From Octopus bimaculoides (Eukaryota): a DNA stretch of 49,712 nucleotides. The notes below the pieces were generated by a model, which saw only the letters and a program-made list of their open reading frames with translations, was not told the origin of the DNA and ran no database searches. The stretch's first letter is position 1; every line of letters begins with the position of its first letter. Position numbers and translations under genes: made by a program. The stretch covers positions 21,589,125-21,638,836 of the forward strand of contig NC_068991.1 of NCBI RefSeq assembly GCF_001194135.2, in the 5' to 3' direction. Below, in pieces: positions 8,286 through 49,072 of the stretch.

Positions 8286-8324
8286 ATGGCGACAGGGATT
8301 ATTTTACTACTTATTATAACACAG
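8286..8324 (+). CDS. Exon 1: signal peptide start MATGIILLLIITQ
   Basis: aataATGG start, hydrophobic run, donor CAG|gtaagg in phase 0. Joins exon 2 to give MATGIILLLIITQFVLTFG, a plausible signal peptide. Vertebrate DLL genes also end exon 1 at ...Q| in phase 0. Confidence 0.75.
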
Positions 8325-9495
8325 GTAAGGGTCATTTCTGTTTTTAACGATGGAAGTAGAGGTTGTGAAGGTGGTAGTGTAGGTTGTGATGATAATGATA
8401 GTGGTGGTGGTGGTGTTGGTGGTGGTGGCAGTTTGATTGTTGTAATGCTGTATGAAATGATGATGAGCCAATAGTTGTTGCTAGAATGGTAATAACAGAG
8501 GTGGTGATCATGGTGGTGGTGGTGGTGGTGGTAGTGGTGGACATGGTGGTGGTATTGCACTTTGCAACTAAGACTTCTCAGGTTCAATCCCACATTGTCG
8601 CATGTTGGGAAAGTGCTTTTATCTGTACTGGCCATAGTAATGGTGGTGGTGGTGGTGGTGGTGGTGGTGGTATAGTAAATAGCATGATGTTGGCTGAGTA
8701 CATACTTCCATGATGATGTCCTTTGTTTTTTGTTTTTTTTAATTACTCAGGTGAGGAAGGAAGGGCAGCACAGAAGTTCTAAGGTTGGAGGGTAGAAAAG
8801 AAGATATTTTCAAATATGGCCCAAATGCTAATGCCAGAATACACTCTACTAAAGAACCAGCCAACAGATTAAGTTTACCATACAGGTTGGCTATAGCAGG
8901 ATTTGAATTCAGAATGTATTTAGCCAAAGCAAATACCACAGGGCAATAGTTCTGCCAATCCATTGCACTATACTAATACTTTATTTTATCTCTGGGCATT
9001 GGCATATCAAAGCTTTGATGCCTAGCATCTGAGTTGATAGAAGGCCTCAAAGATAACCACCATCTTTCCAGCGATAACTTTGGCCATCTTTTTTTTAATT
9101 CAATATTTCTTCCACAGACATGATTATAAAACTAAAAATACATACAGCATCCATGACTTTTGGAAAAAGTTATTGAAGCTCAGAATTGTCCAGGATCCTG
9201 TATCCTTCAAAAGTTCCATACTTCCCCAAATTCACCAACACTACTCCTGATAACCTTTCTTCTTTAAGGTTCTTTTACTGTTTACTTTTCTGTCTTTTTG
9301 TGTTTTATACAGTGTACTGTGCATGTACTACTAACTTCCATTGCTATCTTTTTCTTTTTTTACTTATATGTCTGCTTTCTGTTCCCTATTTCCACTCTGT
9401 TTGACTAACTGTAGTGCACCTGAGCACTGTATACAATAAGCTCATTATTATTATTATTATTATTATTATTATTATTATTATTATTATTATTATTG

Positions 9496-9781
9496 TTCAG
9501 TAGTTTTAGTTTTATAACGTGCTTTCACTTCACTACCGAGCACAGCTCTGTGCGCCTTGGGTATGTGCTGTGGTTTGCTGTGGTGCTCTTATGGTTACTG
9601 TATTGAAAGTGTTTTGCATAAGATGTGTGCTGTGCCCAGTAGTGCAATTTTCTGTATGTTATATATATTTGTAAGTCCTGGTGTTTTTGTTATGTATTTG
9701 TCTGAATATTTTTTTATTATACCTAAGGCACCTACTATGATAGGAATTGTTTCTGTTTTTAGATTCCACATTCGAGTTATC
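9496..9781 (-). mobile_element. 3' end of RLE-type (R4/Dong-like) non-LTR retrotransposon
   Basis: ITRMWNLKTETIPIIVGALGIIKK...IQKIALLGTAHILCKTL, followed by a short 3' UTR that runs into an (AAT)n tract (9446-9495). Confidence 0.75.
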
Positions 9782-10596
9782 NNNNNNNNNNNNNNNNNNN
9801 NNNNNNNNNNNNNNNNNNNNNNNNNNNNNNNNNNNNNNNNNNNNNNNNNNNNNNNNNNNNNNNNNNNNNNNNNNNNNNNNNNNNNNNNNNNNNNNNNNNN
9901 NNNNNNNNNNNNNNNNNNNNNNNNNNNNNNNNNNNNNNNNNNNNNNNNNNNNNNNNNNNNNNNNNNNNNNNNNNNNNNNNNNNNNNNNNNNNNNNNNNNN
10001 NNNNNNNNNNNNNNNNNNNNNNNNNNNNNNNNNNNNNNNNNNNNNNNNNNNNNNNNNNNNNNNNNNNNNNNNNNNNNNNNNNNNNNNNNNNNNNNNNNNN
10101 NNNNNNNNNNNNNNNNNNNNNNNNNNNNNNNNNNNNNNNNNNNNNNNNNNNNNNNNNNNNNNNNNNNNNNNNNNNNNNNNNNNNNNNNNNNNNNNNNNNN
10201 NNNNNNNNNNNNNNNNNNNNNNNNNNNNNNNNNNNNNNNNNNNNNNNNNNNNNNNNNNNNNNNNNNNNNNNNNNNNNNNNNNNNNNNNNNNNNNNNNNNN
10301 NNNNNNNNNNNNNNNNNNNNNNNNNNNNNNNNNNNNNNNNNNNNNNNNNNNNNNNNNNNNNNNNNNNNNNNNNNNNNNNNNNNNNNNNNNNNNNNNNNNN
10401 NNNNNNNNNNNNNNNNTGGTATTAAGCAGAATATTTGCTGTAGCTCATCTTTTATACCAAGACAAAGCAATGTACATGATAACACTTCCAATCAATTAAG
10501 ATCAGAAGCCATGAGAGTCACTGCCTGGTACTGCATCCGGGCATAGCCATTGCCTGGTATATTATTACTTGTACTATTATTATTATTATTATTTAA

Positions 10597-10805
10597 GGAG
10601 GCAAGCTGGCAGAATCATTAGCATGCTAGGCAAAACGCTTAGCAGCATGTCATCCGTCCTTACATTCTGAGTTCAAATTCTGCTGAGGTCGATTTTGCCT
10701 TTCATCCTTTCAGGGCTAATGAAATAAGTACCAGTTGAGCACTGGGGTCAATGTAATCAACATACCTCTCCCTTAACCTTGCTGGCCTTGAGCCAAAACT
10801 TGAAA
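10597..10805 (+). mobile_element. tRNA-derived SINE family B
   Basis: gagctggcagaatc...ctgagttcaaat (B box)...ttgcctttcatcc...aaataagtaccagt. Further copies at about 3150-3290(-), 11862-11975(+), 36605-36795(-), 39745-39945(-), 40095-40305(+) and 48505-48712(+). Confidence 0.8.
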
Positions 10806-47799: not shown

Positions 47800-48023
47800 G
47801 TTAATATCAACGAGTGTAAACCAAATCCTTGCTTTCATGGAGTATGTAAGAATGGATCACCTGGAAGCTACATTTGCATCTGTTATGATGGCTATCTCGG
47901 TGACCAGTGTGAGATAAGGAGAGACATGTGTCTGTACCAGCCTTGTCTTAATAATGGCACTTGTCAAAATACATCCCCCGGTAACTATGTGTGTATCTGT
48001 GCAGTTGGATTCGAAGGTAACAG
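47800..48023 (+). CDS. Exon 10: EGF repeats 6 and most of 7
   Basis: aaaag| ... AG|gtaag, phase 0 to 2. VNINECKPNPCFHGVCKNGSPGSYICICYDGYLGDQCEIRRDMCLYQPCLNNGTCQNTSPGNYVCICAVGFEGN(R). Confidence 0.93.
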
Positions 48024-48500
48024 GTAAGACTACTTTCAAAAATAAACATGTAATTGTACCTGTATATGTGGTCAATTATGGTAAGTGGTGATTTGTCTGA
48101 TCAGTGCAAGCTTGGGGAAAAATGGATGTACAATGATGGGACGGTGATGGTGATGATGAGGATGATGATGATGATGATGATGACAACGACAATGATGAAG
48201 ATGATGATGATGATAATGGCAATGAAGAAGACAACAATAATGATGATGACAAGGACATAGATGATGATAATGATGGTGACAACAACGATGACAGTAATGA
48301 TGACAATGACAACAATGATATCTATGAGGATGATGATGATAACAATGATTATAATAGTGATGAATGTGTTGATTAAGATGGCAATAATGATGGTGACAAC
48401 ACTGCTGCCAAAAATGAAGATGATGATGACAGCAACAACGAGGAAGATGACAACGATGATGATGACTATAACGATGACAATAACAATGACAATAATTCTA
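47990..48500 (+). repeat. Representative microsatellite/low-complexity tract ((GAT)n-type, about 48140-48490); many others window-wide
   Basis: (AT)n, (CA)n, (AAT)n, (CAT/GAT)n, (GGT)n and (GATA)n tracts, e.g. 2520-2590, 8000-8215, 18800-18940, 27700-27750, 39290-39745. Most N gaps abut such tracts. Confidence 0.95.
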
Positions 48501-48751
48501 TTATCTAAGGTGGTGAGCAGGCAGGATCATTAGCACACTGGGCAAAATGCTAAACAGCATTACATCCATTTTTACATTCTGAGTTCAAATTCTGACAAGA
48601 TCGACTGTGCCTATCATTTTTCTGAGGTCAATAAAATAAGTACCAGTTGAGCACTAAGGTCAGTGCAATCGACCTATCCCCTTCCCAGAATTTTCTGTAC
48701 CGAAATTCGAAATCAATAATTCTATTATCTGTTTTACTTTTCTGGTTTCAG

Positions 48752-49072
48752 ATGCCAAATTGATCATGACGAATGTGAAATCAACAAGTGCCAACACAAT
48801 GGTATTTGTCGTGAAGGGAAGCCTGGCTCATTCTATTGTGAATGTCTTCGTGGGTTCAATGGTAAATTATGTGAAAGAGACATTGATGAGTGTGCCAGTC
48901 ATCCTTGTGTTAATAATGGTCAATGCCGACAGGGAAAACCTGGTTTTTTCATCTGTGATTGTCCCCAAGGCTTTAGTGGAATTACTTGTCAAGGAGAGAT
49001 TGATTTCTGTAAGTCAAGGCCTTGCAGGAATGGTGGTACCTGTCTCCATGACGAAGGCAGTGGGTTTTATCA
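48752..49072 (+). CDS. Exon 11: end of EGF7, EGF8, EGF9, start of EGF10
   Basis: tttcag| ... CA|gtaag, phase 2-2. (R)CQIDHDECEINKCQHNGICREGKPGSFYCECLRGFNGKLCERDIDECASHPCVNNGQCRQGKPGFFICDCPQGFSGITCQGEIDFCKSRPCRNGGTCLHDEGSGFY. The repeat is incomplete, so the gene continues. Confidence 0.95.

Follow-up and report, generated by a model that had tools for sequence, protein, structure and literature searches.

What kind of gene lies hidden in the gap-rich stretch of Octopus bimaculoides contig NC_068991.1 that we call the window (the whole stretch of DNA analysed, 49.7 kb long, with positions counted from its first letter), and is its product a Notch ligand? The original prediction, made from the letters of this stretch, proposed that 11 exons between positions 8286 and 49072 encode a Delta/Serrate-like protein comprising a signal peptide, an MNNL/C2 domain, a DSL domain, a cleavable linker and an array of EGF repeats, and that this was not the animal's main Delta. 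The results described below point instead of a classical ligand to a divergent member of the DSL superfamily, a type I membrane glycoprotein that would bind or modulate Notch-type receptors in a non-canonical way. We put the probability of this reading at about 0.6.

One gene in a gap-rich locus

The window has a GC content of 38% and contains 20 runs of N and many microsatellites and interspersed repeats. On its plus strand are several cysteine-rich, stop-free segments: a DSL-like segment at 21879–22070 and EGF-like segments at around 38.1, 40.4, 42.2, 47.8 and 48.7 kb. We rebuilt the gene model independently from splice sites and phases, with a homologue as guide; to find the N-terminal exons, we ran tblastn with the best homologue and enumerated splice-compatible open segments. 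The result is again a chain of 11 plus-strand exons with the same 8286–49072 span. All acceptors are AG and all donors GTAAG or GTAAT, the DSL exon and the EGF exons having textbook acceptors and GTAAG donors. The joined frame is in phase and stop-free over 632 codons plus 2 nt, its 3′ end being open at a donor. The 625 codons given previously were close, the discrepancy probably lying in one or two exon boundaries. It was also correctly predicted that the list of open reading frames (ORFs) for the window misses the DSL exon, as far as the plus strand is concerned. The features of the model are as follows (a slash in sequences marks a junction).

8286–8324, plus strand: exon 1 (putative); ATG and 13 codons, MATGIILLLIITQ; start of the signal peptide; phase 0, donor GTAAGG
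13418–13628, plus strand: exon 2; remainder of the signal peptide, then the first part of the N-terminal domain; four cysteines, including ...IIDACLRKVPSSYPDGDC
14182–14315, plus strand: exon 3; N-terminal domain, ending ...IHLLIPGPIQ; donor GTAAGA
19075–19248, plus strand: exon 4; N-terminal domain (PLELEISMYRQ...VPLL); phase 0 to 0, donor GTAAGT
21879–22011, plus strand: exon 5; DSL domain (Pfam PF01414), CANYFYGTNCSTFCDATKHQLFSCDKAGNKVCQLGTVNEY and the T of the sixth cysteine codon
34847–34915, plus strand: exon 6; completes the sixth DSL cysteine, followed by the linker C-PSPEIQESSIARVRRQSDSSPK
34882–34893, plus strand: RVRR codons within the exon 6 linker, a furin-type R-x-[KR]-R site
38159–38287, plus strand: exon 7; EGF 1 (CHSAPCKNGASC...)
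40470–40583, plus strand: exon 8; EGF 2
42177–42526, plus strand: exon 9; EGF 3–5, two of calcium-binding type
47800–48023, plus strand: exon 10; EGF 6–7
48752–49072, plus strand: exon 11; EGF 8–9 and about two-thirds of EGF 10; donor CA/GTAAGA

Since exon 11 ends at a donor, the gene extends beyond the window.

A search of 5.8 billion protein clusters identified P0001, a protein with DSL and EGF domains, as the closest relative of the model at 50% identity. No protein in these clusters exceeded 50% identity, and none was identical or nearly so, which suggests that the gene is unannotated or that the proteins of this genome are not public. The coding sequence of P0001 lies on L001, a Logan contig of 3.9 kb from sequencing run SRR29271480 of another species; L001 lacks introns and is thus a transcript. 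At ~1895–1910 of L001, a one-base frame slip in a T-run (GTGTTTTTTGTC) divides the 1193-amino acid frame into ORFs of 626 and 555 amino acids and probably reflects an error of assembly or sequencing. The N-terminal region of L001 was used as query both for structure prediction (see below) and for an exhaustive phmmer search of 1.84 billion representative sequences. With its N-terminal domain, this returned only P0001 and two short fragments, P0122 and P0124; a further match, the repetitive 573-amino acid P0123, was rejected as spurious. Both fragments are ORFs called on genomic exon 3 sequence in which ...IPGALQ is followed by GTAAG read-through, placing the boundary as in the window, and the same exon end and read-through are also seen in L002 and L004. 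The last of these is a 29.6-kb ENA contig from a third species that bears one of the exon 3 fragments; at the nucleotide level, no similarity was found between it and the window. Word-seeded homologue searches were erratic, with repeats missing even the sources of the queries, and their negatives are weak; we relied on exhaustive phmmer, and as far as that search sees, the gene family is confined to a few related species.

These relatives bear directly on whether the model describes one gene. Seventeen gaps lie inside its span, all of them intronic (introns 1, 3, 4, 5, 6, 8 and 9) with no N in any of the 11 exons, and nine of the 17 fall within the 12.8-kb intron 5, between the DSL exon and the linker exon. 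Two separate genes, one contributing the 5′ exons (signal peptide, N-terminal domain and DSL) and the other the EGF exons, might thus have been mis-scaffolded across the gaps, and a 296-bp duplicate of 100% identity that adjoins two gaps is in keeping with such an error. DNA continuity across the gaps cannot be proven from the window sequence alone, and the relatives were used as a test. The intron-less transcript L001, however, has the same parts in the same order: it is colinear with exons 2–11 of the model over the first ~640 of its 1193 residues, with 49% identity overall (~27% in the N-terminal domain and ~57% in the EGFs, which match one-to-one), and the sole length difference is the shorter linker in the window, no block being missing. 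Across the N-terminal region the BLASTP match has E = 1e-14 over 153 residues. The genomic contig L004, which is contiguous, joins in order the orthologues of exon 2 (at 9084–9299), exon 3, exon 4 (at 12712–12894) and the DSL exon, followed by an acidic linker exon that contains RRIRR; all are on one strand and have the same boundaries, and the phases of the window exons agree at every junction. Because L001 is colinear and L004 keeps exons 2–6, the 5′ exons and the EGF exons make up one gene, as had been predicted, and the absence of a missing block relative to L001 indicates that no large coding block is concealed in a gap. A chimera of two genes is, in our judgement, highly improbable, and we are confident that the gene and its architecture are real.

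It might also be argued that the octopus sequence is a decaying or unexpressed copy of a gene that functions in its relatives: the transcript comes from another species, the linker is shorter than theirs and, as noted, the 5.8 billion clusters hold no near-identical protein. Against this, all 11 exons are open, their canonical splice sites are intact and every EGF and DSL cysteine is kept over the 632 codons. Such intactness would be unlikely without selection, making a pseudogene very improbable.

Two of the exons merit further comment. Exon 1 is the least certain of the model. It is one of three candidates within 1–13417 and has the best start context of these. It ends with Q at phase 0 (...Q/GTAAGG), like the ...ALQ/N of the orthologue, in line with the phase-0 boundary previously described. 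In L004, the exon 2 orthologue has the acceptor ...cctag/AAC at phase 0 with an in-frame stop just upstream, so a separate phase-0 exon must hold the start of the signal peptide there, and the conservation of this arrangement supports exon 1 as originally proposed. Together, exons 1 (putative) and 2 encode a putative signal peptide, MATGIILLLIITQFVLTFG/NS, which is hydrophobic and has small residues at −1 and −3; the N-terminus of L001 is predicted to be helical at residues 2–21. The exon 2 frame is also open upstream (~13350–13417) through the polypyrimidine tract, and ATGs at ~13350–13382 (MKMRLQSVFMHFFFLSFISFQ/FVLTFG...) would provide an alternative start with a conventional signal peptide and without exon 1.

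Exon 6 follows from the end of exon 5: as the latter stops one base into the sixth cysteine codon, the following exon has to begin with GT or GC. In 22012–38160, a single candidate combines a G[TC] start in phase 1 with an open frame, a good donor and a preceding polypyrimidine tract. A direct join between the DSL exon and the first EGF exon keeps the phase but loses the sixth DSL cysteine, and linker exon 6 was used instead. At exon 7 there is a tandem acceptor of NAGNAG type (38153–38161, ttttag/CAG/TG), both forms of which keep the frame, giving ...SPK-S-VFPP or ...SPK-L-FPP. Two further segments were tried as N-terminal exons and rejected, 11104–11298 ('SGFELKIQE...CC', Delta-like to the eye) and 20391–20495; in both cases the phases fail and there is neither a Pfam signal nor a counterpart in the orthologue. 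A 215-amino acid minus-strand ORF at 39982–40629 is the antisense of an intron and EGF exon 8, has no domain support and was likewise set aside.

A degenerate DSL domain on an EGF stalk

DSL domains are about 45 amino acids in length, with six cysteines that are conserved and with a YYG motif. In the window all six cysteines are present and FYG replaces YYG. PF01414 scores 37.4 bits on exon 5 and 32 bits in the full model (cutoff 24.2), comparable values being obtained for L001 (34.5 bits) and L004 (36.4 bits), and profile matches to DLL1, DLL4 and Jagged-1 in the PDB run through the DSL segment. The canonical ligands score about twice as much (human DLL1, 70 bits; fly Serrate, 67 bits). An alignment of 15 DSL domains reveals where the difference lies. 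Seven canonical ligands, of human, fly and spider origin, share the invariant motifs C[RK]PR[DN]D.FGH and GW (the latter within GW.G..C), which a crinoid protein keeps almost unchanged. In their place the window has CDATKHQ--LF, with a two-residue deletion, and GTVNEYC; the corresponding sequences of its two relatives are CDS[KR].N.--[ST][YF]Y and GI. Mean identity to the canonical DSL domains is 35–37%, compared with 49–59% amongst the canonical domains themselves. The DSL domain is degenerate, its conserved receptor-facing motifs having been lost.

The DSL domain is not directly followed by EGF1 and EGF2. Instead, an unstructured, Ser/Pro-rich linker of 23 residues containing RVRR separates it from the first EGF; the linkers of L001 and L004 are acidic, ~35–50 residues long and contain RRIRR. 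The R-x-[KR]-R motif occurs once per ectodomain and at the same place in the three species, the linker being otherwise unconserved. A cleavable linker at this position was part of the original prediction and is supported by the conserved site, and whether furin-type processing would take place there is, we think, evenly balanced.

Beyond the linker, PF00008 scores 189 bits over ten stretches, and the cysteine pattern defines nine complete EGFs and a partial tenth. These EGFs are Notch-like: five are of the calcium-binding type, four carry the O-glucose consensus and six the O-fucose consensus. Six N-glycosylation sequons are found in the head, suggesting that this part would be N-glycosylated. 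In L001 the orthologous protein runs on (...SGFYRCRCLPGF...) past the part equivalent to the window, to a total of 22 EGFs, a transmembrane helix at 1142–1167 and a 26-residue tail that ends HIPDLM and has no ATEV motif; the window therefore holds approximately the first half of the gene. No VWC domain was found in the C-terminal 267 amino acids of the orthologue, where Pfam gives EGF-type families only.

A non-canonical receptor binder or an adhesion protein?

How might such a protein work? On the reading that we favour, it would enter the secretory pathway and be cut at RVRR by a furin-type convertase. The cut would separate a head, comprising the N-terminal and DSL domains, from a membrane-anchored EGF stalk, and the head would be either released or non-covalently attached. 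It seems more likely that the protein binds or modulates Notch-type EGF receptors in a non-canonical way than that it pulls on its receptor as a ligand and activates it in trans, because the contact motifs are lost, EGF1–2 do not follow the DSL domain and the tail appears too short for the usual ubiquitin or endocytosis signals. That the protein acts on the Notch pathway itself is a tentative proposal that we consider less likely than not, and the decoy or modulator function originally put forward is conjecture.

A number of points count against the favoured reading. Notch binding is something we infer, and the evidence for cleavage is a motif of four residues. For the transmembrane helix and tail we depend on the orthologue, whose contig needs the 1-nt T-run correction. 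Transcript support is another species' contig, with exon 1 and expression in the octopus being putative. The most extensive set of results concerns the N-terminal domain, a fast-evolving region of ~160–170 residues with four cysteines at the position occupied by MNNL/C2 in Notch ligands. The Pfam comparison recommended in the original prediction succeeded for DSL and the EGF array but failed for MNNL: PF07657 matches none of the three sequences (window, L001 and L004) at thresholds of E ≤ 10 or E ≤ 1, compared with 176 bits in DLL1, 132 in Serrate, 40 in Haliotis P0018 and 19 in Pomacea P0095. A profile of the window protein and its relatives matches PDB ligands via the DSL and EGF parts only. 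When the N-terminal domain alone was compared with MNNL by hhalign (the MNNL set being eight sequences, six from PDB alignments and two mollusc proteins, with DLL1 and JAG1 confirmed at 100%), an E-value of 0.19 was obtained, equalling that of the reversed control (0.21). Two AlphaFold runs gave low confidence (mean predicted local distance difference test scores, pLDDT, of 41 and 44), the first being confident in the DSL domain only, and Foldseek returned generic beta-sandwiches only, with E ≥ 0.035 and no ligand C2 domain. Its matches to arrestin, the CEP120 C2 domain and Asf1 were discarded as meaningless at E ≥ 0.035 and template modelling (TM) scores ≤ 0.32.

The MNNL/C2 assignment made at the outset is thus not supported. 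There are nonetheless weaker indications in its favour. An alignment anchored on the DSL domain is colinear through the N-terminal domain, placing IIDAC-LRKVPSSYPDGD-C onto FFRVC-LKHYQASVSPEPP-C, IPGPIQPLELEI onto NPIRFPFGF (QPLxL versus NPIxF) and SLKLIF onto TFSLIIEA (LKLIF versus SLIIEA), and the CL[RK]-x12-C spacing equals that of DLL4 exactly. Against the MNNL hidden Markov model, the three real sequences beat 96–99.6% of their own shuffles (p ~ 0.004–0.036, a weak signal). The second AlphaFold run, made from the single sequence, gave an all-beta model of ~7 strands, at the low confidence already mentioned. Given its position, length and cysteine spacing together with this weak signal, the domain is plausibly a very divergent MNNL/C2, the label 'C2' being unproven.

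Much of the same evidence can be read in another way. The main rival to a receptor binder is an EGF-repeat protein of adhesion or matrix, with a function like that of fibropellin or Crumbs and a head that is either vestigial or reused for a partner other than Notch. The best-scoring matches to the EGF array are fibropellin, Crumbs, Eyes-shut and Notch-type proteins, the DSL domain is without the invariant contact motifs, MNNL is not detectable, and the tail of the orthologue is short and lacks ATEV. What this does not readily explain is that three divergent species have a DSL domain above the Pfam threshold, with its six-cysteine framework and YYG-type motif, and that the layout of head, linker and stalk is kept in the relatives. 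The retention of framework and layout points to selection on the head, and DSL domains are not known to have any partner other than the EGFs of the Notch family. On balance we consider an adhesion or matrix role unlikely, and prefer the non-canonical receptor binder.

Comparison with known ligands and the significance of the family

Comparison with known systems helps to place the gene. In common with DLL1, DLL4 and Drosophila Delta, the protein has a type I order of signal peptide, N-terminal domain, six-cysteine DSL and EGFs, followed in the orthologue by a transmembrane helix. It differs from them in having no MNNL match, in a DSL domain with roughly half of the usual score and neither CRPRDD.FGH nor GW, and in a furin-site linker that takes the place of EGF1–2 after the DSL. 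The orthologue differs further in having 22 EGFs where canonical Deltas have 8–9, and in a tail of 26 residues that includes neither ATEV nor a long ubiquitinated intracellular domain. In Jagged/Serrate proteins, a VWC or cysteine-rich domain follows at least 16 EGFs. The long array rich in calcium-binding EGFs behind a DSL domain is reminiscent of these, but in the orthologue neither VWC nor a cysteine-rich domain separates the EGFs from the membrane, and the N-terminal region and DSL of the window protein diverge from Jagged/Serrate in the same ways as from Delta.

Might the gene nevertheless be the canonical Delta or Jagged orthologue of the species, odd only because the model is incomplete? 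The order of its parts fits a domain-count definition of 'Delta' (PMC5356439), provided that the N-terminal domain is taken as MNNL. However, the ligands score 132–176 bits for MNNL and 67–70 for DSL, where the window protein scores nothing and 32–37, respectively; its motifs are lost, a linker replaces EGF1–2, and the orthologue combines 22 EGFs with the absence of VWC and ATEV. Moreover, in cephalopods Delta is duplicated, and the presence of ordinary Delta and Jagged genes has been reported (PMC8166818). Of the explanations considered, this is the least probable. The view that the gene is not the animal's main Delta is therefore well founded (DSL identity of 35% versus 49–59%, core motifs lost, 22 EGFs in the orthologue), and a lineage-restricted paralogue rather than a canonical Delta is very probable.

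Proteins with DSL and EGF domains form a documented and rapidly diversifying group in lophotrochozoans, where 138 DSL genes have been described and both domains are expanded (PMC8166818); Lottia has seven copies of Delta (PMC2770060), and the extra Delta-like proteins of lophotrochozoans are described as of 'origin uncertain' (PMC5356439). Amongst the molluscs, the Haliotis proteins P0002 and P0018 and Pomacea P0095 resemble the window protein in having a divergent DSL domain and many ordinary EGFs. Such proteins are often auto-named 'fibropellin-1-like', which bears out the warning that genes of this type could easily be mislabelled. In all three, however, an EGF follows the DSL immediately, neither linker nor furin site intervening, and GW is largely retained; P0018 and P0095 are still recognised by the MNNL profile, and no significant similarity to the window's N-terminal region was found in those of the three proteins. 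The furin-site linker, the loss of GW and an N-terminal domain that the MNNL profile does not recognise set the window family apart from these mollusc DSL and EGF proteins.

More distant analogies are instructive. Fibropellin combines an EGF array with CUB and avidin-like C-terminal domains. Neither CUB nor avidin has a Pfam match in the model or in the parts of the orthologue scanned, and the likeness to fibropellin is confined to the EGF array. The Notch receptor, processed by furin at S1, is also a type I protein of EGF repeats with a furin-type site in its ectodomain and consensus sites for O-glucose and O-fucose. Here, though, the site is placed where the head meets the EGF array and not near the membrane, and the parallel, with cleavage being predicted, is an analogy only; Pfam finds no LNR, NRR, heterodimerisation or ankyrin domains in the C-terminal part of the orthologue, with its tail of 26 amino acids. 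A search of titles and abstracts, a weak negative, found no paper on a convertase site between the DSL and EGFs of a ligand. The DSL ligands of C. elegans are short, with 0–2 EGFs and no long stalk or furin linker. They have no specific sequence relationship to the window protein. These ligands (LAG-2, APX-1 and the secreted DSL-1 family) nonetheless set a precedent in departing from the Drosophila pattern and in including soluble forms (PMC2504490).

The introns and flanks of the gene are rich in repeats. Fragments of a retrotransposon of the long interspersed nuclear element (LINE) type lie at 4983–6905 (plus strand), with copies at 24142–25108 (plus) and 32139–32915 (minus); an endonuclease-like ORF scores 22 bits for Exo_endo_phos_2, below its cutoff, and a reverse transcriptase 79.5 bits for RVT_1. 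The first is upstream of the gene, and the degraded copies, 69–86% identical, are within intron 5. Another reverse-transcriptase fragment (14879–15231, minus strand, RVT_1 22 bits, below cutoff), in intron 3, runs into the gap at 15232. The 296-bp duplicate consists of 28260–28555, which follows a gap ending at 28259, and 29434–29729, which precedes a gap starting at 29730; an inverted copy, 93–95% identical, lies at 37682–38068. A young repeat is one possible origin of the duplicate, a local duplication in the assembly another. Another repeat family, with 92–94% identity, is found in introns 3, 7 and 9 (17493–17810, 38564–38880 and 46969–47109), and others have 72–91% identity (e.g. 445–853, 2287–2761, 3405–3663, 6976–7222 and 30512–30839). 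Long microsatellites include (AAT)n at 20300–20372, upstream of an exon-like open segment, and (AC)n, (ATAC)n and (ATG)n at gap edges; such tracts give rise to many long mechanical ORFs.

What does this gene mean for our understanding of DSL proteins? Divergent lophotrochozoan DSL and EGF genes are already known to be numerous and the function proposed here is inferred; the gene is a member of a known, expanding group rather than a system of a new kind. Its recovery illustrates how genes of this sort are missed or called 'fibropellin-like' in gap-rich mollusc assemblies, and provides a curated exon model for its 5′ half. Notch ligands are thought to act by cell contact, through a rigid rod of C2, DSL and EGF domains and endocytic pulling. 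A conserved family in which a DSL head without its contact motifs is hinged off a Notch-like 22-EGF stalk by a convertase site would represent a natural experiment on which parts of a ligand are dispensable, and might bring to light a way for DSL proteins to act in soluble form or in cis. At its most speculative, the protein might be a 'pro-ligand' from which a convertase would free a soluble head of ~25–30 kDa, C2-like domain and DSL together, which would diffuse and act at a distance on Notch-type receptors, either as an antagonist or as a ligand, with the 22-EGF stalk staying on the producing cell. We think this distinctly improbable; if true, it would be a lineage-specific, apparently cephalopod-like, conversion of juxtacrine DSL signalling to a secreted cue.

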